A DNA stretch of 63,515 nucleotides, the filler included, from Lenisia limosa (taxonomy: Eukaryota; Protista; Breviatea): NCBI GenBank assembly GCA_001655205.1. It is 13 parts of 13 records of this genome, joined end to end, with 100 filler letters (N's around TTAATTAATTAA, not from the genome) between each part and the next. Parts side by side here need not be neighbours in the genome. Positions count along the whole stretch, not along the records: positions 1 to 15,010 come from LPNZ01003953.1; 12 more parts are not named here. One strand, written 5' to 3'. Position numbers and translations under genes: made by a program. The notes under the pieces are model-generated. The model saw only the letters and a list, made by a program, of their open reading frames with translations, was not told where the DNA came from and ran no database searches. Position 1 is the first letter of the stretch, and each line of letters begins with the position of its first letter. This document shows positions 2 through 15,010 of this stretch, one piece after another.

Positions 2-882
2 GCGTTGGATGACAGTATCACAACCGGACACGAACTTAACGCGCTTCTCTTTGCGGAAGACGATCTTCGGATCAAAAGTCTCAACGTCACGGCTACAACC
101 TGCAGTGTCGCGTGTGCTGCAATCCAAGATTGCAACCACTGCACACAGGTCTGCTGGTGCTAATTCATTACCATACAATTATATAGTGTACTTATTATGA
201 AGGGACGGAGAGGAATTAGTTATTCAAATGACATAATATTCATTTTCTGTGGTGTTGAAGGCTCATTGTTTGTTTTTTTTCGCATTGGCGTTTCTTTTTC
301 TGAGTGAGATATCACCTCTTTTCAGGAGCTATACTGCGGTTGGTGTACAGATGGTGAAGGTGGAGGAAGCTGTGTTGCCGGGGATGACACGTNNNNNNNN
401 NNNNNNNNNNNNNNNNNNNNNNNNNNNNNNNNNNNNNNNNNNNNNNNNNNNNNNNNNNNNNNNNNNNNNNNNNNNNNNNNNNNNNNNNNNNNNNNNNNNN
501 NNNNNNNNNNNNNNNNNNNNNNNNNNNNNNNNNNNNNNNNNNNNNNATGGTTTAGTATTGATAAAATTGTATCTGAGAGTGGAATCTCACACCTTGGATT
601 TTGGGTAGACAAGAGCTTCCCTAAATGCGTGGATAAATGTGAATAAAATTGGGCCATCCTAGGCAATTTTGAGATCATGTTGACACCCAAAACTCTACTA
701 ATGAGCAGAGTATTAACACTATGCATACGTATTGATCACATCAAAATGCTGTGATTCTAGCAATTTTTCATTTTTAAGGTGGATTGCATTGCCAATACAT
801 GTACACCCTAGAAGCTTGTGTTGCCGACCAATCCTGTGGATGGTGTGACGACACGTTATGTATTCCCGTTCAGTCTTATCAA
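2..882 (+). other. Tandem PSI (plexin/semaphorin/integrin)-like Cys-rich modules at the 5' end of the giant gene
   Basis: Spliced reading gives CSVACAAIQDCNHCTQ|ELYCGWCTDGEGGGSCVAGDD and LHCQYMYTLEACVADQSCGWCDDTLC, matching the C-x-C-x-C-x-CGWC-x-C pattern of PSI domains; junctions are in phase. Confidence 0.7.
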
Positions 883-3800
883 GTATGTCCAACTGCAATT
901 ATTTGAGAGCCAGGTTCCAAATACAACATAATGGGATAAAAGACATATAGTATATCACATTCACTTCTATTCCCATTGTTCTACTTCTATACGCGCTACA
1001 GAAGTAGCTTAGATCCAGGACTAATCACCAGAGTTCTCCAGAGTTGACTGTTGTGCACGCATGTGGTCAAGACATAACTTACTTCTCGAGTATGCTGGGA
1101 AGATGGTCTTTCTGGAGAGACGCGATTAAAAGATAACTAATATCGAAACAATATCAATGGGATAATGACGTTGAAGGCTTTTCTTCTTTATCTCAGGCTG
1201 ATTTGTTTAGTTCCGCCAGTGGTGCATGATGAGGTCATTTGGGTCAACCAGGACCCCGGGAGTCTTGTCATTTCCGTACCTTATTACGATGTTGACGGTA
1301 GCGGGTCCAGTAAAGACACCGTATCTCTTGAGATTACAAGCGTGATGGCAGCCTTTCCCTTTGCTCTTAACCTCAATACGACAGTACCATCTAATGGAAC
1401 CCTGGACTTCCCTCTGAACCTTCCATCTGGCTTCACGGGCACCGCACTTGTCATCAACGCTGCTCTAAACGATGACGTGTCTACCCGCCAGTTCAGTATC
1501 ACTGTCCACGTCCGACCTGTGGCATCTGCGCCAACATACGCCAGTTTTAACGTGAGCGTTCCCTTTGAGCCTCTTAAGACCGCGCATACCGTTGCCCTTG
1601 GTGCATCTTCTCCGAACGCTGCTCTTGTTCAATGTCAAATTTTGAGCCTCCCACTCAATGGCAAGTTGTACCAGAGTGTTGATGGTACAACTGGAGCTGA
1701 AATTGCCGTGAATGACACCGTGCATTCTCTGTCTCTTGAGGTGAGCTTTCCCCACATGCCTGGACTTAATAAGGATAAGTAGAACATATCATAATTGCAC
1801 ATTAATGGGAGTTATTTTTTAGATATTTCAGGAACTTGAAATGTGCACTCTTCTATATTCGTTCTATCTGACCAACCGCGGTGTCTCTAACAACCCAGGT
1901 GAAATACGAGTCTGCTTCCGGTCTCTCGGCATCCTCGTGGTTCTTTTTCGATTTCCAGTGCTCTTCATCCGACGTTTCTGGCCCCCCAGCTACCGCCAAT
2001 ATTCTCACTGTTGTAAGCAACAGAGCGCCGGAAGCCAAAGCCCAGCATGGTGCTGTTGAAGCCGGCGGTGTAGTAGAGTTGGAGCTCGGAGCAAGTGATT
2101 TGGATCTTGACGTCCTGGTGTTTTCTATCGAGTCCTTACCCAATGACGGGCAATTGTACGCCATCAATTCCAACGGGTCTCTCAGTGAGGAAATCACAGC
2201 ACCTGGTGTGCTTGTCAGTTCACGAGTTCTGTTTGCTTCCCCCAGCGGATCTCCACCTCCATACGGGCTTGCTTTTGCGAATTTTACCTTCACTGCTTCG
2301 GACGGCCTGGTTACATCTCCTTCAACAACAGTAATGATTACTGTTACTCCTGCCGATATGCCGACTGCAGCAACAGACCAAGTTCTCACCGTTCTTGAGG
2401 ACAATGTGGCGCGTTTTGACATTAAGAACTGCTTCTCTGACCCGGACACTGCAGCCTTGAACTTTACCCTGGTCCAGGCCCCGCTTTTCGGCTCGGTCTT
2501 TGCTTCCGATGTTGGACAGTTGAGCGGATCAAAAATTGAACCTGGACCGCTGCCAGCAAGTGTCATCTACTTCGCTCCGCCTCGCAACTCCAATGGCGCC
2601 AACGCCACTTCCTTTACTGTGGGCGTTGAAGGTAGTAATGCAACTGCCATTGTGACTGTTGACATTGTGGCCGTTCCAGATGCTCCAATTGCAGTTTCGG
2701 GGTCACTTGTGGCCAAGGCAAATACAACATTTACATGGACCGTAACGGCATTTGATGCAGACGCTGACACTATGACAGCTGAACTCGTTTCTCTTCCGCT
2801 CTTGGCCAACACCACGCTTTCGGGCGTGCCGGTGACTGTTGGTGACGTCATCGCTATTCCATCGGATCTTGAGATCGCAGTTGCAGCAAATATTTTTTCA
2901 GCAGTCACAACGAGCCTACTGGCAACAATCATGGACAGCACGAATCTCACTACCTCATATGAAGCAAGTTTTACCTTTGTTGATATTGTCCCACCCGCTG
3001 TTCGTCCTTCTCTAACAACAAGTTCACTTAATGTTACTTCAGGCGTCATAGCGTGTTTTGAGTTCCTCGTAGAAGACCCAGACTCCCTCACTGCCAATCT
3101 GCGCCTCCAGGTGATTACTATTCCGGCCAGCCTGTCCATCTTTGATCTATCATCAGACGGAGTTGAGCTTCAGCCTTCTGACGTGTCATCTTCTCTGAGC
3201 CTCTGTGTTCTTGCTGATGTTGGTGTGACCACCGTTGGTTCAGCGCTGGTTTTGCAGCCTAAGGACGAAGTCGGCTTTGGGGAGGCAAAGAATGTCACTT
3301 TTGTGATCACTCCGAGCCAACAGCCCCCAGTGGCACACGACCAAGATATCTTTGCTGAAGGACCTGGTGATGTTTCAATTACACTTTCGGGGCTGCATCC
3401 TTTTGATCTTCCGATCACATTCAACATCACCAGCGTGAGTGGAGAAGGTTCTTTGTACCAGTGCAGTCTTGGCGTGAGAGGAGATGCGATAGACAGTCTC
3501 GGAGCGGTCATTGATCCCGCGGCTGAAGTTTGCTTCGTCCCAAGCCCCATGTCGGAAGCCAAACCTGCCATGACAGTCACATATGTTGCTATTGACGGTA
3601 ATGGAATGGTCTCATCCGAAGCGTCGGTGTTCATTGCGACTCTCCGCAGTTTAGAAGCACCATTGGCCTTCAGCAACGCTGTGAGTATTAACGAGGATTC
3701 ACACTTCACGAAAGTCCTCCTTGAGGGGTCGGACCCAAACGCCGACCTCATCAAAGCCAAAATCACAAGCTTACCAGAGCCTTCCGTTGCCTTGTTCAGT

Positions 3801-6800
3801 GTTGTTGTAGATGGTTCTGTCGGACCTGCTGTTCAAGAAAACGCTACCCTCTCGTCGAACTCCATTTTCATCAAGCCAGCTGTGGGCTATTCAGGGTCGG
3901 TTTTAGTGACGTTTGTTATGGAGAACCAAGCCAATTTACTGTCCGCTCCGGCTAATCTATCCGTCTCTGTCCTTCCCGTTCAGCATATTTCAGTTGCTCT
4001 CCCTGCGAACATCGTGTTAAATGATATGTCTGAGGTGGCTATTCCACTGTCTTTTTCCGGGAGCGATTGCAATCTCACCAGCATTGTGGTTGAGAGTGTT
4101 CAATCTGGAACTTCATACGGCTCTTTTCATGAGACTGGTGGCCAAGAGCTGATGGGAAACAATACGCTTTCCGGCTCTGTAAGTAACGTTTTATTTGTGC
4201 CTTTCTTCAGCCATGGTGTACAAGAGCTGACTTTCTTCGCTATTGACGAGTTAAACCGAACAACCAACACTGCTGTTGTGAGGGTTGAACTCCCGTTTTC
4301 CAATGTCGCTCCCAGTATGACTGCGTCCACCTTTGCCGCTTTCGAGGACGTCGCCATTGAGCTTCAGATCGACTATGCTGACCCAGATACGTCGTACAGT
4401 AACATCCAGATCTGCTTGGACCGAGAGCCTTCTGAGGGTACTTTATCTCGACTGATACCACTCGCTGCTGGTGACTGTGTGACTGAGCCCTATTTGGAGT
4501 ACCTGTCATCTCCGGGATTCTCCGGTCTTGTCAGCTTCGACTGCCATCTTTTTGACGGGTACAATTCTTCTGCTGTAACGGAGATCTTCATCAACATCCA
4601 GCCTGTCAATAACAGACCAGTTGTCAACGACTCTCTCATTGTCATCGATGAGGTATGCTCCTTCAAGGGGAGGGGAGGCATTTCAATTAATCAGGATATA
4701 TGACATGTACATAAGATACAAACCCTTGTTTTATTGTCTCTACTGGTTTAAGAGTTTTTTATCCTCTTTTTAGGATACAGAAGTTGTAGTAGCCCCCTTG
4801 TCGTCAGATGTGGACGGACCATCCGATCCCGTGATCACTCTTCTTAGCTTGCCGTCTCTCGGCCTGGTGTACCAGGTTGGTTTGGCTGTGGGTATTTATT
4901 TTCAAGATAATGGTGTGTATCTGTTTTTTTTTGAGGGTTTTGCTCCATTTGCTCATCCGAACAGGTCAATAACAGAGGAGTTCGTCAGGACAGGATTACC
5001 TCTGTTCCCTGTGACCTCACCAGTGTACCCCCGAGGTTCGCCACTTGATGAAGCTATTTCTTTTTTCTCTCCAATCAATTGACATCACTCTCTATTTTGT
5101 TTTTTTGCTTTCCGCTACCATATTTTCTATATGTTGCAGTTTTGGTCTCCTCTAGCACATTCCAGGCCATTATTTCCCACTTTTAGAAGTGTCATCTTAT
5201 ACCTATAATCTCCCAGGTTCCGCTACCTTCCCCCACAAAACCAATTCTCCGAACCTGGGCAGAACTTCACTTCACTGACCTTCGATGCTACTGACTCTAT
5301 TCGAAGGGCTCTCCCAGGCACCATTATATTCCAGGTAGGTCTCAATTGTATAATGAAGGATTCTCTATTATACCGTGCTTTTCTATCAAATGCTATTGTT
5401 TGACCACCATTTTCACTCTGCTCTATTTTCCTTGTTACTTTATGGTTCTGCTCTTTGTTTTCCCTTTTCTTTGGTTTCATCTACCTCTACTCTGGATATC
5501 ATCCTCATACTTTAGGTCACGGCCGTTAATGATGCACCAACCCTGGTGATTGCTTCTGAAATAGTGGGAACCGAGGACGTCTCCCTTCCCATTGACGCTG
5601 AAATGGTCGATATCGACAATGACGTTTCCACCCTCTCCGTCATCTGCACCAACATCACGTTGAATGGCCAGCTATGTCTCTCTGGGGGCTTTAACAGCAC
5701 AGTTTGTGTCACCCCGCTGACAGTATTCCCGACTGGACCTATTCAACCCCATCTGGTCTATCTCCCCCTCGACAATGAAAACGAAGTGGTTGGGACCGTA
5801 TCCATGAAGACGATCGACCCTGAGGGACTTGAAAGTGGCGGATCTGTCACCACCATTCGCCTGTCCGCTGTTAACGACCCGCCTACTGTTCCCAATGTTA
5901 CTGTTGTCAATGTGATTGAGGACATCATGACGGACTTCACACTTGAGGGATTTGATGTAGAAGACGACCTTTTTAGTTGGACTGTTGTGAGTCTTCCAGA
6001 CAAGGGCACTCTCTATCAAGGTAAGCTCCATAAGAGATATCATATTTGTGTAGGTAGTATTGTCATTTCAAGCATTAATGGTCAATTCAACGGCTTATGT
6101 TGTTACTCGTGTAGTGACAATGGAAGCGATAGTGGCCCCGAACACTGCTGTGGTGTCGTTTGGCGGATCTCTTAAGTACCAAGGAGCTCTGAACGGCTTC
6201 GGCATGAACTACACACAATTCACTGTGATGGCCACTGACATACACGGAGACTCCAGCTACAGTAACGTGTCTATTAACGTCATCAATGTGGACGACCCTC
6301 CGGTTGCCCTTACCAAGGCCATTTCCATTCTGGAAGACCAGCCTGTGATCGTCGATCTGTTGGAGTGCACTCGTGATATTGAAACTGGCGAGACCATGAG
6401 TTTTGAAGTGTGAAGGCTGTTCTTTGAAATGTTATCAAATAACTAGTAATATTATTTCACATTGATTTGCTCATTATTTGAAAATTCAGACTGTTTTTAC
6501 TTTCTCTAGATCACCATGCTTCCAAGTCCCTCCATGCTTTATCAGTATGTTGACACACCACCCCATAAAGGAGCAGCCATAACGACTACACCGATCTTGG
6601 TCACGCACCCCGACAACCTTGTGGTGTTCCATCCCTTCCCCAATGGCAACGGAGACCCTTTCACCGCCTTTGAGGCGTCAGTGTGGGACGGCAAGGCGTA
6701 CTCAGAAGACCCTGCTCGGATGGTTGTTAGTGTTACACCTGTCTCGGATGCGCCCTTCCCGCAACTTTCCTTATTAGGGAGTCTTGTGGAAGATGTCAAG

Positions 6801-9800
6801 GTCTCGCTCATGATTACCGGCACGGATCCCGATGGTGATGAGTGCTACCCCTCAGTTGTCAGGCTTCCGTCGACAGGCACGCTATATCTGGCAGATCAAG
6901 AAGGCAAAGTTGACCGCGAGTTGCTTCAGGCTGAAATCCCGTACAAGTCCGCCAACCAAAAGTTGCTGCTCCACTTCTACCCTCCGTCAAATGCCAATGG
7001 AAACATCACGTCATTTGAATATAGTGTTACTGACACAGGGGGGCTTGAGTCAGCCGCTGAGGAGTACTGGTTTGTCTTAGAACCACGCAACGACTCTCCT
7101 CTGTCTTATTCGTCATCAGTTGTGGTTCAGGACGGACACAGTGCCACAATCGAGGTTAATGGAACTGACGTTGAAGGTGACCCCTACCGTGCTAAAATCC
7201 TCAGTTTGCCATACTACGGTGCCCTGCGCCAGGTGCCAAGCAACGGCGCTATTGCTATTGGGGACTTCTTGGATGCGGGTACGACATTGACGTTTTACTC
7301 CAACATGGAGAATACTTGGAACCTCTATTCGTCTTTCACCTTCGAGCTGCACGCGTCTGACGGCTCAAATGGAACTTCCTTCCCTTCAGCCATTTATCTT
7401 CAGATTGAGCCCAACCCTGATCCACCTATTAACAATAATGGCACATCTAACAACGGAACAAACTGGGGAGACCCTGGAGACGGTACCGGCTCTGTGCCTG
7501 ATGTGCAGAATGGCGAACAATCCGTGACTACTGCAGAGGACGTTTCGCTGACGATGAACCTTTTCGACATGTGGTTTGATTTCGCAGGAGCCCGTCGTGA
7601 GGCAAGAAGCGAACGCTCCACTGAACTTTTCATTCAGTTTACTATTCTGCCTGACCGCGGTGAGCTCTCCTTTGTCAACCCTGATGAGAGCATTGTTCTG
7701 AACGACCGCTATTCAGACCAGTCGAGGAATGTGTCCTACCTACCGCCTCGAGACCAGAGCGGGCCGTCTTTTACTGTGTTTTACATTCACGTTATAGAAG
7801 TTAGTGGATCTGAAACCACTGTCGGAACTTTGCGCGTTGAAATTGCTGTTGACGCCGTAACTGACCCTGCGGAGGCCCAGGACTTCATCCAGGAAGGTCA
7901 AGAAGACATGCCCCTTCCTGTCCTGCTCATCAACAACATCCATAACCCGGACTCCCTGGGTAAGCTGTCGTGTAACATCACTTCTCTCCCGTCGAATGGA
8001 CGCCTCTTTACAACCACGCCGGAGTATAACATGGAAAATCCAATCACGGTTTCTGGGACTGTGGCTCCGGGTTGTGTGGTCATTTTCGAACCCGAGCAAA
8101 ACGTGCATAACAATGGCCAACAGAACTTAACGTCTTTCACCTGGTTTGCCTTCTCCAATTTGGAGGCCATCACGTCTGAACCTATTGTTGCCACTGCGAC
8201 CATTTCAATTACCAACGTCAACGACGCACCAGAGCAAGTTTTCAACAAAATCACCATCAACGAGGGTGAGCTCACACGCATTCCAGTTAAAGGCTACGAT
8301 GTTGATGGTGACGCAATGGTTGCATCAATGACGGACTTGCTCACCGAAGAACGTTTGAATATGTATGAGGACGTTGAAGGAGTGGTGGGAGATCTCATCT
8401 CCTTGCCGTTCAACTTGAGCATTCCTGAAAGTGGCACGGCGTACATTTGGATTGAGACGGCAGCGGATCTTAACGGTGACCCAGTTGGCAGCTTCTCGTA
8501 CCTCACAGAGGACATCTATGGGGCTCAAAGCTCGACAGGGAGCGTTGTTATGATTGCTGTAACCGGTGTTAACACACACCCTGTCACATCCAGCCTTAAC
8601 GTCACAACAATTGAGGACACTGCCTCTATCATTCATTTAATTGGCTCGGATACTGAAGGCCCGGTAACACACTTTGTTATTGTTGTCCCTCCAACCACTG
8701 GTTTGATGTTCCACACGACCGGCGGAACAGCAGACTTGTCTCGGCCAATCACTGAATTCCCTGCCACTCTAGACTTGTCTGTTTATCTCGTGGCCTTCAG
8801 GGGTGCCGTGAACGTTTTCGGTGATGATATTGAGTCGTTCACTTACATAGCTCTGGACAAGCATAACGCCACATCGGTGCCTTCCCTTGTTACTATTTCC
8901 ATTATTCCTATCAACGATCTGCCAAGTAGTGACGACGGCAGTTTCACCGTTACAGAAGACACTGTACACGCCTTCAATGTCACTGGTGCTGATCCTGATT
9001 CTGACCCTGCTGACATTCTGGTCGAGTTTATTTCTTTCCCTCTCAACGGAAAACTCTACTTAGATCAAAACTGCACCATTGCAGTTTTACCAGGTCAAGA
9101 ATTCAGCTTTGTAACCGAGTTCTTCTATATGCCGAATCTCAACCTATTCTCTCCTCGTGATGACGTGTCAGTTGGTCAGTTCGATCGGTTTTCTTTCGTC
9201 TCAAAAGACACCCCGGGCGGCTCAACCCTCCTCCCGGCCCGATTTGATGTTCTTCAAAGCATAGGCGTCAACGACCCCCCTGTTTCTCTCCCAGTTGTAA
9301 TCAACATTGACGAGGACGAGGTCATCACCCTTGACTTGCCATATGAAGACCCAGACGACGATTTGCCCTCAGCAATCGTCATCACCGTTCCAACACTCGG
9401 CACGCTTTCCTTTGTCAACGGGACCATTATTTCCAACAACAATACAGTGGTCAGCAGTCCGACTCGCGTGACGTACACTCCTCCCCCCGACGAGAGTGGA
9501 ACGGGTGTTGATACGTTCTCTATTTACTTCACGGATGGCGAGTACAACTCAACTATCCAAACAGCCACTATTACAATTTCTGAGGTATGCTGGAGAGGTG
9601 CTGAGGTAAAACGAGGTTAATGAAAACAATAATGTTTTTAAAAAAATGTTTGAAAAGCAGATTCTCATATGATATAACTATCTAATGTGAAATTATTTTA
9701 AAGAACTGGCGATTGATTTCTGATTGCTATTAGGTAAACGATGCTCCAACCGCTACAGCCGAGACCATCTCCTTGAATGAGGACGAATACGCGTTCTTCA

Positions 9801-12800
9801 CTCTCAATATCACAGACGTTGATGACCTCCTTACCTCCGTTAAGGCCATTATCACAAGGCTTCCGTTTAGTGGTGCTCTCTACAAGGTTTGTGCCTTTCA
9901 TTGTTTCAAATCATACCATCATATTAATGAGTAATTTTGGACCCAAAGAAGAAACGAAAGTACTAGTATTATATCATGCTACGTAGACTATTCTCATTTC
10001 CCTTTGCTCATCCGCATTCTGCCCGATTTTGATATTCTAGGTTCTTCCAGGAGATGTTGTGAGTTCAGAGATCACTTCAAAGAATTTCGAGCTCTCTTTC
10101 CCTCATCGAGTGGCCTTCCTTCCCCTTCGTGACGAGTTTGGTGCACCGTACGACACCATGCAGTTCAAGGCCAGTGATGGGGATAAGGCCTCGTCGGTCG
10201 TGACGGTGGCCTTCGACGTCATTTCGGTCAATGATGCACCATCTGCAAACAACGATGTTATCAAGCTTAAGGAAGATTCTTCTATCTTAGTAGCTCCCAC
10301 TGCCTATGATGAAACACCTTCCGTGTCTCTGACTATTCTCATTGAAGCGATTCCTCCCGATGCTGACCTCTTCCAAGCCAACCCCGATGGATCGCAAGGG
10401 GCTGCTATCACTGAGAACTCCACTGTGCTGACCAACCCCTCTAATCTCTTCATTTATGTACCCAATGCTGACCTTTGTGGTGTTCTCACAAGTGTCCAGT
10501 TTTCAACACAGGATTATGAATACCCGGATCAAACGATTGGACTGATTAAGGTGATTTTGGACGTTATTGTACATTTTGAAAATAGTTAAATATATCTTGC
10601 ATACTACGTTATCTATCATTTTGATTACATCCTCTTCTTACCATCCAGCCCAAGGTGGAATGTGTTAATGACCCACCCGTTTCCACTAGTGTCACCGTCA
10701 ACGCAACAGAAGACACGGTCCTCACCTTGGGCCTTCCTGCTTATGACGTGGACGAGGACAAAACACCCAGTGTGTTCCAAGGCAAAACCTGTGCCATTAA
10801 GTCCCTACCTTCTGGCACTTTATCGGTTTGTGGGGGTAATGGACCGAGTTTTCCGGGTTCGGACTCAAGAATTTTCATATTTTTTATTAATAGTACTATG
10901 ATACAATGTGATTTTATATGAAACATAGTGAGTGATAAAATTTTACAAACCAACCAATAGTGTTGAGACATTTCTCTGACGCACTCAGGCGAACGGCACC
11001 ATTTTGGCGATCGACGACGTTGTGGATGACTGCATGGTTCAATACCTACCACCAGACAACCTCTACGGCACGGCACAAGACGCCATGAGCTATCTGGTCC
11101 AAGATCATCGGTTGTCCAGTGCCGTGTCCGTTGTGACCTTTGATATTCTCCCCATCAACGACGTCGTCACTATCATATGGCCGTCTGCAGCGGATGCCAC
11201 TGAGGACTCAACCAAGCGTCTCTTCCAGGACTCAGACTGGTCCTTCTTCGACTTTGATGACGAGGGTAATGACCTCGAGGCAACTGTTACCATTCCTTCC
11301 AACGTTGGCACACTTCAAGCCCCTGTTTCTTCCTGTGCTGTTACGGCCATTACAAATGGCATGACTGTTAATTGCCCGACTCCTGATCTTGGAACCTTCT
11401 TTGACCAAATGATTCTGGTTCCTGTCCCTGACTATTACGGTGCCGCAGTGCTCAACACTTCAGTTGTAGACTCGCACACAGGTCCACCCGTTCATACCGT
11501 CAATGGGACCGTCCTCTTCATTGTTGAAGCAGTTAATGATGCTCCCGACCTGACCAATGTGGCAGCCGGCCACTCCGGTCTGAACGGTGTTGAAGATACC
11601 ATTCTCAGTGTTACAGCCCCCTTTGTGGTGTTCGATCGTGATGCAGAAGGGCAAAACATGTTGGTCACAGTAGAATGTGGTGATTGCAAGTTAGCTTTGA
11701 GTGGAAGTCCGGTTGGAGTAACAATGCTCACTGGGACAAACACCAAGACGCTTTCTTTCCAAGCCAGCCCTGCTGACGCTACTACTGTCCTGGCCTCCAA
11801 TATCCAGGCTACGCCAGACCACCAGTTCAACGGTAACACAACGCTAACAATTACTGTCAATGACCAAGCCAACACGGGAACTGTTGCACAGGAAAGCGTT
11901 ATGTCCACATTGTTGTTCTTTGATGCTGTTGCCGATGTCCCGATTCTCTCTGTTCAGGACGCTACAGGAAACGAAGATACGGACATCACGGCGCTCTCAA
12001 CCGCCTCAACCGCTCTCGGTGCTTCTTCAGAATCACTTGTTAAGCAAGTCGTAACCCTTGGTCAGACAGGTTCAATTGTGGTCGGAGGCACGGTTGTCGG
12101 TCCGCTTCAGTTCTCAGTGGGACCGATGGAAGACATTGTTGTGCGCGGACCGCTTCACTGGGCTGGAGACATTGCAATCAGTGTTGAGCTCTTCACATCC
12201 GAGCCGAGGAATGGCGATGAGGCTTCGGTGGTGGATAACTGCACCGTCACGATTCTCCCTGTTGCCACAACACCAACCATTAACCTTATTCCAACAACGG
12301 TGAATGTCAATGAGGATCAAGGCAAAACGTTTGCGATTGACGCTGTTTTGGAGGATGTTGACGGTTCTGAGATTCTCTATGCCATTCTCAGTGGAGTGGA
12401 GGGTGTCATCACTGGAGCCACATCGCTTGGCGGCGGTGTATGGAGAGTCGAGTCTGCTAATTTCGCATCAATAGAGCTGATACCTGTTCTGGACAGTGGC
12501 AGAGAGTTCAATGTCACAGTCACGATTGCTGCAGAAGAGACGGAAACAAATGAAAAAGCCACCGTTGCTCAGGATATCAGTTTCAGTATTTTCGCTATTG
12601 CTGATCCTGCCCTTCTTACCACTGGAAATATCACTATTGATGAAGGTTAGCTGTGGTTATGTTTTTTTTTTTTTTTTTTGNNNNNNNNNNNNNNNNNNNN
12701 NNNNNNNNNNNNNNNNNNNNNTCATAGTTCTCTCCCTTTTCAATGGTTTCCAAAGTTCCTTTGTGACTCTGCAGATACCTCGGTGTCTTTCCTTCGCATT

Positions 12801-15010
12801 GCTGATGTCGACGAATCCGAAACAGCCACGTTGGTGGTCTCAGGGGTACCCGTGGGGTCCTCACTCAACGCTGGTACTGACATGGGCTCTGGAGTCTGGA
12901 ATGTCAGCGAAAGTCAATTCGATTTCGTATTGAAGGTTTGTTTTCACTTTTTTTTTAAAATCTATGAAACATTCTCCTTTACTAAATTCTTTTTTTTTTT
13001 TTTCAAGCTCACCCTCTAGGATCTTCGGTTCCAGCCAGGGCTTCACTGGGACGGCATTGCCAACCTTACTATCGGCCCAGGTTTCGTAATCGAATATGAG
13101 AACGACAACTCTTGGGCCATTTTGCCGGTTGAGCTCAACGTCACTGTGTTACCAATCCCCGATGTTCCGAGTATTGTAGTTGCTTCTGTTTCTGGTGATG
13201 AGGACACTAACCTTGCTTTGAGCGTTTCTGTTGCCCTTGTGGACCCCTCAGAAGTTCTTCTTGACGTGCGCCTTGAAGGCCTTCCTCTTGGGACAACTCT
13301 CAATGGGGGAATTGAGGTATCAGAAGGAGTCCACACCATACCTGCCGCTAACCTTCCGGCCGCGTATGTCCGCCTCCCGGAACATCTCCACGGTTTATGG
13401 ACTATCACCGTCGTTGCGTACTCTAAGGAACAAGAAGGGGGCACGGCACAAAACACTGACTCTTTTGACTTGACCAGTGTTGCAGTAGCCGACCAGCCGA
13501 CCTTGGCACTTCCTGGCCCCGCGATGGGTGACGAGGATGTCGACCTTCCCTTCCCTATCACTTCGGCCTTAGTGGATACTGATGGATCAGAATCGTTGAA
13601 AGTTGTTATTTCTGGACTTCCCACTGGATCCTCAGCGAACCTTGGCTCTATTGGCCCGGGTGATGGCGTCATCACAGTATCAAACTCCGACACTTCTTCT
13701 CTTGCCACCTTTTCTCTAACCTTGACCGAGCATTGGTCGGGTGATTCAACCTTGACGATAACCGCTATTTCTACTGATGATGGTGGTGTTGAAAGCTCGA
13801 ACTTCGGTACTGTTGATATTTCTATCAATCCAGTGACAGACATGCCAAACTTGTCAGTTGTCACCACGCCTGAAGGGGATGAAGACACTTGGATCACTTT
13901 CGTAGTGGACGCTTCTCTTGTTGATACTGATGGGTCAGAGGTTCTCTCTGACGTCAGGATTCTCAATGTTCCTGAATTTGCTTCCTTATCCAAAGGTACT
14001 GACCAAGGTGGTGGGGAATGGCACCTAGGGCCTCTTGAATACAGCTTTGCTATTAAACCGGAGTACCGCAATGGTGACAGCTTTACTGTCGACATAGAGG
14101 TGAATGCTACTGAAAATGGCATGCCGGAAACCAAGCAACTCAGCCAAGAAGTCAAGGTTCATCCTGTCGCCAATGCCGCTATCGTTTCCCTTGACAGCCC
14201 CGTCTCTGGTGATGAAGATACAGTTTTGGCGTTCTCAGTCACCGCCGACCTGGATGATCTTGATGGTTCTGAAACTATGACTGCGATCATTTTTGATGTC
14301 CCCACTGGTGCTATTCTGTGCTGTTCAGTCACAGCCACGGCTACTCCTGGTGAATACACTGTGGATGACCTTATGGCACTGACTGCAATGAGCATCCAGC
14401 CACCGCCAAACAGTGATGTTGACTTTTCCTTGACCCTCCGTGTCACGTCTACAGAAGCTGGAAACTCAGATTCGACCTTTGTGGATCTCCCTATTCCCGT
14501 CGAAGTCATTGCTGTTCCTGATGCGCCTAATCTTGCCACTGGTCCCTTCGTTATGGATGAAAACAACGAAACTGAAATCGCTACTTCACTTGTGGATACT
14601 GATGGTTCTGAAAGACTTTCCTTAGTTGTTACAATGGATCTTAGTGCAAGCCTTACGTGTGGCACACATCAAGGTGGTGGCATTTGGCATGTCTCCCACT
14701 CTCAGCTTTCTGTATGCGCCAACCTTGCTGTAACACCTGAGGACTACAATGCTGACAACCTTTCTGTACATATAGTCGCCACAGCTACTGAGCAAAACGA
14801 CCTTTCGCCTACTGCTGACACCATTGCCAATATTGCTATCACAGTTAATCCGAAAGCCACCCCACCATCTGTTGTTCTTACTCCTTCTCTAGGCAGGCCT
14901 AACGTGCCTATTCCCCTTTTGGCAGTTGTCGGCTTAGTCGATACTGACGGATCGGAATTCTTGCATGATGTCACCATTTCTGGTATAGGCACAGGTGTGC
15001 TCAACCTTCC
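2..15010 (+). CDS. Giant (about 4,250 aa, partial at both ends) spliced extracellular repeat protein: PSI-like Cys modules followed by roughly 30 or more bacterial-type Ig/cadherin-like repeats
   Basis: Phase-compatible GT-AG exons: 2-148, 326-638 (spans an N gap), 779-882, ~1032-1089, 1211-1740, 1899-4652, 4774-4875, 4965-5035, 5217-5334, 5516-6020, ~6073-6407, 6510-9584, 9734-9886, 10041-10550, ~10655-10825, 10989-12645, 12775-12935, 13020-15010; total about 12.75 kb. Splicing rebuilds intact motifs across junctions (IFQ|VTAVNDAP, ISE|VNDAP, IDE|DTSV). Recurrent motifs: VNDAP/VNDPP, ED, DxDGD, SLPxxGxLY, YxP, DxDGSE. A few acceptors (1032, 6073, 10655) have equally in-phase alternatives. 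Confidence 0.9.

Follow-up and report, generated by a model that had tools for sequence, protein, structure and literature searches.

How did a protist come to encode, in one intron-rich gene, long arrays of the repeats from which bacteria build giant adhesins? The question is raised by a locus of Lenisia limosa (Breviatea; assembly GCA_001655205.1) that occupies positions 2-15010 of the window, a stretch of 63,515 nucleotides (nt), filler included, in which 13 parts of the assembly are joined and along which positions are counted here. The analyzed piece is a whole 15,009-nt SPAdes scaffold from a metagenome-type assembly (NODE_993 of ENA assembly ERZ3820729, ~71 Mb in total), with two N gaps and a coverage of ~32x, and it covers 15 kb from the middle of a single spliceosomal-intron-bearing nuclear gene of a microbial eukaryote. 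The explanation that we favor, with a probability of roughly 0.6 for the explanation as a whole, is that the gene encodes a giant eukaryotic extracellular cadherin-like rod protein with two kinds of repeat, in which the first class (A-type) has long been resident in eukaryotes and the second array (B-type) is probably an old capture from bacteria.

On the plus strand, stop-free stretches switch from one frame to another, and between them lie short AT-rich segments that begin with GT and end with a pyrimidine run and AG. When 13 such GT..AG introns are removed from exons 5-18 (1197-15010), an uninterrupted frame of 4,053 amino acids (aa) is obtained, and the repeat unit is back in register after each removal, as in IDE|DTEVV, ISE|VNDAP and LYK|VLPGD. 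These introns are 37-181 nt long with a GC content of 0.25-0.39, compared with ~0.5 for the exons. Exons 1-4 contribute a further ~116 aa, bringing the whole gene model to 18 exons, 17 introns and ~4,170 aa, with the reading frame unclosed at position 2 and at position 15010. This agrees closely with an earlier note on this DNA, which had described one open-ended frame of ~4,250 aa over 18 spliceosomal exons.

The domain order along the predicted protein is at least two PSI-like cysteine modules, then ~26 A-type repeats, then at least nine B-type repeats, amounting to ~35 beads (Table 1). A local repeat hidden Markov model (HMM) built from the piece places the A-type units, degenerate ones counted, at residues 104-3092, with 105-125 aa each and the motif series VNDAP..EDT..DxDGD..LPxxGxLY..YxP. 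The B-type units, delimited with a B-unit HMM, are nine consecutive copies of ~115 aa at residues 3093-4053, the last one cut by the scaffold edge, and their series reads P-x-L..G-x-EDT..L-x-DTDGSE..G-x-P-x-G. All of the motifs listed in the earlier note (VNDAP, ED, DxDGD, LPxxGxLY, YxP and, later, DxDGSE) are present. Pfam matches are to Cadherin_4 (E 3e-31), Big_9 (E ~6e-18 to 7e-18) and Ig_SibA (E 7e-14) in exon 12, and also to Cadherin_3/5, while the NCBIfam match is to tandem-95 repeats. Together with the bacterial top scorers described below, these matches bear out the proposal that the repeats belong to the Big_9/tandem-95/cadherin-like class found in bacterial RTX adhesins of the type I secretion system (T1SS). 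The motifs of animal cadherins had been said to be absent, and Pfam Cadherin (PF00028) gives no match even at E<=10; likewise, the search for an integrin-beta-type VWA gave no VWA or Integrin_beta match in any exon of the piece. The composition is strongly acidic, with 519 D+E vs 125 K+R.

Eukaryotic modules had been surmised at the N-terminal side, and this is where the PSI-like modules lie. Pfam PSI (PF01437), applied to single exons, scores below its gathering cut-off (E 0.022 for module 1, which is cut by assembly gap 1, and E 0.012 for module 2), and the joined PSI-like exons can be aligned with the PSI domain of a Cavostelium protein (P0055, see below), with the same cysteine spacing and CGWC core. 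From PSI-like module 2 to the first repeat there are 314 nt that look non-coding. At the other side, RTX nonapeptides were not found within the piece (GGxGxD count of 0, no match to HemolysinCabind), the C-terminus of the protein lying beyond it, and neither a retention module nor a T1SS signal is present in the piece.

Several properties bear on the age and integrity of the arrays. Units within an array are ~29-32% identical for both A and B, tandem repetition is absent at the DNA level, and GC is 0.49 throughout, uniform over the A and B parts; we therefore regard the arrays as old. The switch from A to B falls inside one uninterrupted exon (10989-12645) and on one 12.7-kb contig, and because of this and the uniform GC the junction is not an assembly chimera. 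Secretory glycosylation sites had also been advanced as evidence of domestication in a eukaryote. N-x-S/T sequons are over-represented (63 vs 38.8 expected, z ~4), but many bacterial homologues show an equal enrichment, so that the excess is uninformative on glycosylation and was rejected as a sign of eukaryotic secretion.

The 13 introns between exons 5 and 18 fall at five recurring positions of the repeat unit (12 close pairs vs 3.0 expected, P=0.0006), with three before VNDAP, two within E|DT, four after LPxxGxLYQ/K, three near model position 66 and one at position 42. Either units were duplicated with their introns inside a eukaryote, or the conserved Q/K/E-V codons (MAG|GT) are preferred insertion sites; since intron phases differ in a few cases among the recurring positions, both explanations may apply.

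Where the A-type array comes from was approached through its relatives. Exon 12 served as the query of an exhaustive HMMER search, which returned 3,844 matches with scores that sum over many repeats, and the named top scorers are bacterial: Mycolicibacterium Ig-like proteins, a Pseudomonas 'retention module-containing protein', and planctomycete and Thalassospira tandem-95 proteins. The same assembly as that of the gene contains a paralogue (P0130) of at least three exons on another contig (L003; ERZ3820729 NODE_5012, 271-2985; coverage 27.9, GC 0.43). This paralogue is collinear with residues 1800-2558 of the gene at 27% identity, has a Pro-rich linker at the equivalent place, and shares the intron after LPxxGxL[YF][KE]|VLPGD (L003 2756-2824, LPKKGQLFE|VLPGD). 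Two intron positions are not shared, as the paralogue is without the gene's intron at 9585 and carries one that is absent from the gene.

The array also has relatives in other eukaryotes. A protein from the transcriptome of Cavostelium apophysatum (P0055) combines a signal peptide, LamG3, vWD, EGF, PSI, an integrin-beta VWA, at least 17 repeats, a transmembrane segment and an NPLF tail, which is the architecture described as 'type II ITGB' for Variosea (bioRxiv 10.1101/2020.04.29.069435). Two further eukaryotic proteins, P0097 (L007 8001-20603) and P0138 (L008 23-12073), are single open reading frames (ORFs) of 4,000-4,200 aa in which Reelin/LamG modules, 15-18 Big_9/Cadherin_4/Ig_SibA repeats and a RasGAP domain are combined. 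The gene for P0097 lies in a compact genome, with PCNA, Arv1, SHMT and a COG8-like gene as neighbors, and we know of no description of this RasGAP-tailed, receptor-like architecture. The earlier note had recognized no described eukaryotic family with the architecture of the gene, a view that gives way before Ig_SibA (PF24619), a Pfam family based on the adhesion receptors called Sib in Dictyostelium, the variosean type II ITGB and the RasGAP proteins.

At the level of single units, the A-type array carries a modest and unsettled sequence signal of shared lineage with these eukaryotic proteins. In a tree of 212 units (113 columns; 140 bacterial and 53 other eukaryotic rows), the nearest neighbor is eukaryotic for 16 of the 19 gene A units, with 73% of the other rows being bacterial, and the bacterial label changes 10 times vs 59 in shuffles. 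When A units are compared with 4,074 bacterial and 55 eukaryotic units, this preference weakens to an enrichment, the eukaryotic ones being ~5-fold more frequent among the top 10, and in a search with a three-unit segment the paralogue takes rank 1 and the Cavostelium protein rank 3 of 154, the identity of the latter (31.6%) being the highest among those listed. Because A arrays are found in described eukaryotic receptors and the paralogue shares an intron, any transfer of the A array would have happened long ago and would concern more than this gene. It is unlikely that this gene alone acquired the array recently, since DNA-level repeats are absent, GC is uniform and the paralogue with the shared intron is itself old.

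Judged from its sequence relatives, the B-type array is the best candidate for bacterial capture. Exon 18 has 127 protein matches (E to 3e-125) at 34-38% identity over >90% of its length, three-B-unit segments reach up to 40% identity to bacterial proteins, and the named matches of the array are all bacterial, many of them from Alphaproteobacteria (Azospirillum, Rhodospirillales, Thalassospira) and many with HemolysinCabind. The best B-type homologue (P0195; L005 3526-12799) is encoded on a bacterial contig of low GC content (0.35), where two ABC transporter genes, an HlyD/AprE-type fusion gene and then a response-regulator gene lie immediately upstream, an arrangement that suggests a T1SS substrate. 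B units were not found in the three eukaryotic relatives of the A array. Each B unit of the gene shares 39-45% identity with bacterial units, against a mean of 32% with its sisters, and forms a long branch among bacterial units in the unrooted tree, a pattern consistent with units that were captured long ago as a homogeneous array of bacterial origin and have diverged independently since then. The captured array, derived from an alphaproteobacterial-type RTX adhesin, would later have gained introns and the base composition of its host. In its most specific form, namely that at least nine DxDGSE units were captured from an alphaproteobacterial-type RTX/T1SS adhesin and joined to an older eukaryotic cadherin-like stalk, as the first eukaryotic case of its class, the proposal is a tentative one, which we consider possible rather than probable.

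Two proteins with a low-GC amino-acid signature, P0269 and P0273, were considered as eukaryotic B-type proteins and rejected, their contigs being phage-like. They are 922-930 aa long with DxDGSE-like repeats (P0269 at L009 6001-8793 and L010 530-3322), and the contigs, of up to 317 kb, hold RtcB, a GIY-YIG/NUMOD3 endonuclease and a YadA-stalk-like gene amid numerous small genes. P0269 and P0273 may belong to a jumbo phage and serve it as fibres or adhesins. Two loci considered as multi-exon genes, L004 and L006, were also rejected, as both are GC-rich bacterial genes broken by long-read frameshifts.

A number of points weigh against the favored explanation. The repeat-level phylogeny that the earlier note had proposed does show the eukaryotic enrichment among A neighbors, but single-domain trees are mostly unresolved, with 120 of 201 forks left open. 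When single domains are compared by BLAST in the larger set of units described above, 20 of the 22 A units have a bacterial sequence as their best partner, ahead by a few bits. A and B units co-occur in bacterial proteins (P0034, P0111, P0212), and the eukaryotic absence of B units rests on few inspected proteins and on databases dominated by bacteria. Close relatives of the gene were found neither among 5.8 billion clusters, where nothing exceeds 38% identity, nor in JGI metagenome contigs searched with exon 16. RNA support for the locus was not found in two run searches or in the one listed poly-A metatranscriptome of the same study, which has no contig on the locus, so that the junctions are predicted from sequence. 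Finally, surface location and adhesion are proposed by analogy, and a signal peptide, transmembrane segment, glycosylphosphatidylinositol signal or RTX tail is not visible because both ends of the gene lie beyond the piece.

Some of these results would be expected if the whole A+B array had instead been acquired by one transfer from a proteobacterial T1SS/RTX adhesin, with introns gained and eukaryotic N-terminal modules fused afterwards, an alternative that we judge unlikely. One transfer would account for the highest total scores belonging to bacterial giant adhesins, for the bacterial best partners of nearly all A repeats, and for the three bacterial proteins that carry A and B units in a single chain, while the gene's B units would be expected to stand closer to bacterial units than to their sisters if the bacterial array from which they diverged was homogeneous. 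However, eukaryotes have A arrays in several receptor architectures that are unrelated to one another, the nearest neighbors are enriched in eukaryotic domains, and a paralogue at only 27% identity shares an intron with the gene. Moreover, none of the bacterial proteins in the local set runs from an extended A block into an extended B block, the composition is fully host-like, and the direction of transfer cannot be rooted. The earlier note had inferred the domestication of a horizontally acquired bacterial array, and this is most plausible for the B array; a recent transfer into this gene is improbable, and an ancient bacterial origin of the A array is neither shown nor excluded.

What such a protein would do was addressed through its predicted fold. 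Structure prediction had been put forward in the earlier note as a check, and we ran AlphaFold on three-unit segments, for which strings of beta-sandwiches are predicted both for three B units (13467-14519; predicted local distance difference test, pLDDT, of 94.4) and for three A units (8556-9584; pLDDT of 91.4). The three-domain models align with triples of extracellular cadherin (EC) domains from cadherins and protocadherins at Z 10-11.4 over 275-300 residues (identity 11-16%), with Z 11.4 for the A-unit model against the cadherin-23 triple, and with extenders of RTX adhesins from Aeromonas (6xi1) and Marinomonas (4p99 and 5irb) at Z 9.3-9.8. Nearly invariant in both the A and the B alignments are the E-D of EDT, the DxDGD or DxDGSE, and the N-D of VNDAP (N-D-x-P). 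In solved relatives, the equivalent acidic residues coordinate Ca2+ at domain junctions, and by analogy the gene product would bind Ca2+ as well. The earlier note had envisaged a Ca-binding stalk parallel to cadherins; with cadherin EC arrays as structural matches to the predicted fold (Z ~11), a Ca-dependent stalk with a cadherin-like function is plausible on the strength of these models.

In the mechanism that we propose, Ca2+ held by the acidic residues at the domain junctions would stiffen the chain into a rod >100 nm in length. This rod may project from, or span, the cell surface, where it could mediate adhesion, or the attachment of matrix and cover, in the manner of amoebal Sib/type II integrin-beta-like receptors and bacterial RTX adhesins; secretion, Ca2+ binding, rod length and the adhesive role are thus things that we infer. 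The array might instead serve as the ectodomain of a signaling receptor, as in P0097 and P0138, or as a structural part of the cell covering or extracellular matrix, and not as an adhesin. The same repeats do precede RasGAP in two eukaryotic proteins, and with the C-terminus beyond the piece a signaling tail is possible, but nothing in the piece points to signaling, and the characterized proteins with such arrays, namely the Sib proteins, RTX adhesins and the Trichomonas vaginalis CLP (PMC6520450), are adhesive, which leaves a non-adhesive role quite improbable.

The scaffold contains two assembly gaps. Gap 2 (12681-12721) lies inside an intron, after a T run, between exons whose phases agree. 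B-unit 3 (residues 3316-3435), which spans the junction of these exons, gives a full-length match, and the two sides of the gap therefore belong together. Gap 1 (393-546) interrupts exon 2; here, the DNA is continuous because a single Logan contig of run X1, 12,697 nt in length, covers 1-392 and 547-2000 with 118 unread letters between. Run X1 (71 Mb of contigs, the longest 178 kb) is the sole public run in which the scaffold occurs and probably its source. That the locus is an artefact, whether an error-broken bacterial adhesin gene or a chimeric eukaryotic/bacterial scaffold, might be suspected from a metagenome-type scaffold with two N gaps and from long-read bacterial homologues (L004, L006) that appear as strings of broken ORFs, but it is highly implausible, as the interruptions here are AT-rich GT..AG segments of 37-181 nt whose removal puts the units in register, the A-to-B switch stands in one uninterrupted exon on a single contig, GC is 0.49 throughout vs 0.62-0.67 in the contigs of those homologues, and B-unit 3 is in register across gap 2.

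Some details of the locus stand apart from these arguments. The same Logan contig reaches 42 nt upstream of the first base and stops near 12680, so that the raw run may yield more of the gene. Long T runs occur within introns at 12661-12680 and 12990-13005, and the first of these, which abuts gap 2, probably caused it. The gene model has two weak spots. One is the join of exons 4 and 5, where the strongest donor (GTATGT at 883, phase 0) and the strongest acceptor (poly-pyrimidine CAG at 1196/1197) disagree in phase; phase-compatible donors of exon 4 lie at 855 and 873, and a micro-exon concealed in 883-1196 is an alternative. The other is the intron at 6021-6057 (GTAAGC..GTAG), which is, at 37 nt, the sole frame-consistent join of exons 10 and 11, the other twelve being 84-181 nt long, and an assembly indel is an alternative to it. 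Minus-strand ORFs, of up to 370 aa, gave no family match, and searches of the piece for Rfam families, tRNAs and tandemly repeated DNA were negative.

Table 1. Positions of exons, selected introns and repeat regions of the Lenisia limosa gene, counted along the window
Feature	Position	Strand	Basis and content
Exon 1	2-148	+	Frame-2 translation, donor GTCTGC at 149; edge-open; its end is the first half of PSI-like module 1 (C-x3-C-x5-C-x2-C)
Exon 2	326-392+	+	Acceptor TTTTCAG at 325; CGWC core of PSI-like module 1; enters gap 1
Exon 3	609-638	+	Splice context; PSI-like module 2 (with exon 4)
Intron between exons 3 and 4	639-778	+	
Exon 4	779-882	+	Splice context; PSI-like module 2 (with exon 3); donor ambiguous, 883 or 855/873
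Exons 5-9	1197-1740, 1899-4652, 4774-4875, 4965-5035, 5217-5334	+	A-type repeats
Exons 10-12	5516-6020, 6058-6407, 6510-9584	+	A-type repeats
Exons 13-15	9734-9886, 10041-10550, 10655-10825	+	A-type repeats
Exon 16	10989-12645	+	A-type to 11912, B-type from 11913
Exons 17, 18	12775-12935, 13020-15010	+	B-type repeats; exon 18 edge-open
A-type repeat region	1197-11912	+	Stop-free gene model, Pfam/NCBIfam matches, repeat HMM, AlphaFold
B-type repeat region	11913-15010	+	B-unit HMM, bacterial RTX/T1SS matches, AlphaFold
Pro/Asn/Gly low-complexity linker in A array, exon 12	7407-7511	+	Repeat-HMM domain gap at residues 1781-1810; translation
Intron after LPxxGxLYK|VLPGD	9887-10040	+	Position common to the paralogue on L003
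Intron with assembly gap 2	12646-12774	+	GTTAGC..CTGCAG, phases compatible

By itself, the gene overturns nothing, as the principle was set by Sib and type II integrin-beta-like proteins. It does illustrate that giant surface proteins of eukaryotes have repeatedly been built from the 'bacterial' class of cadherin-like repeats, and it places such repeats in a new order in one protist: two PSI-like modules, A array, B array. If the capture of the B array is true, it would represent a clean, intron-dated, domain-level transfer into a eukaryotic adhesion molecule, would show that protist surface proteins can reuse parts of bacterial adhesins as modules, and would bear on the origin of cell-surface adhesion toolkits outside animals.

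Compared with known systems, the gene shares its repeat families with T1SS/RTX adhesins (the LapA-like 'retention module-containing' proteins, the Marinomonas adhesin MpIBP of 4p99/5irb, the Aeromonas protein of 6xi1, and alphaproteobacterial 'beta strand repeat-containing' proteins), with B units 35-40% identical over three units, and the rod predicted for its product likewise consists of beta-sandwich beads of the Ca type. It differs from them in having 17 spliceosomal introns, a eukaryotic composition and PSI-like modules, and the piece carries no retention module, nonapeptides or T1SS signal. With metazoan cadherins and protocadherins (cadherin-23, CELSR1, Fat4), it shares the fold, the tandem geometry and acidic junction motifs, where VNDAP may occupy the place of the cadherin DxNDNxP, but the identity of 11-16% and the missing PF00028 match set it apart. 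Among protists, the T. vaginalis CLP is a small surface protein with a cadherin-like fold that has been implicated in adherence (PMC6520450), and we liken the gene product to it by description. P0097 and P0138, the frequent nearest neighbors of the gene's repeats, have A arrays of 15-18 units but lack B units and carry a RasGAP domain, and in their N-terminal part, which is different, PSI was not found. Like the gene product with its PSI-like modules, the Sib proteins of Dictyostelium (SibA-E, with Pfam Ig_SibA, PF24619, and vWA_SIBA-E, PF24909) and the variosean type II ITGB are giant eukaryotic proteins with PSI upstream of a long Cadherin_4/Big_9/Ig_SibA array. The Sib repeats resemble bacterial proteins as well, to go by the Pfam Ig_SibA matches. 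Set against the type II ITGB of Cavostelium, the gene is without a VWA/beta-I domain between its PSI modules and repeats, and instead has two tandem PSI-like modules, ~26 A units vs 17-18, and at least nine B units that are absent from its Cavostelium counterpart.

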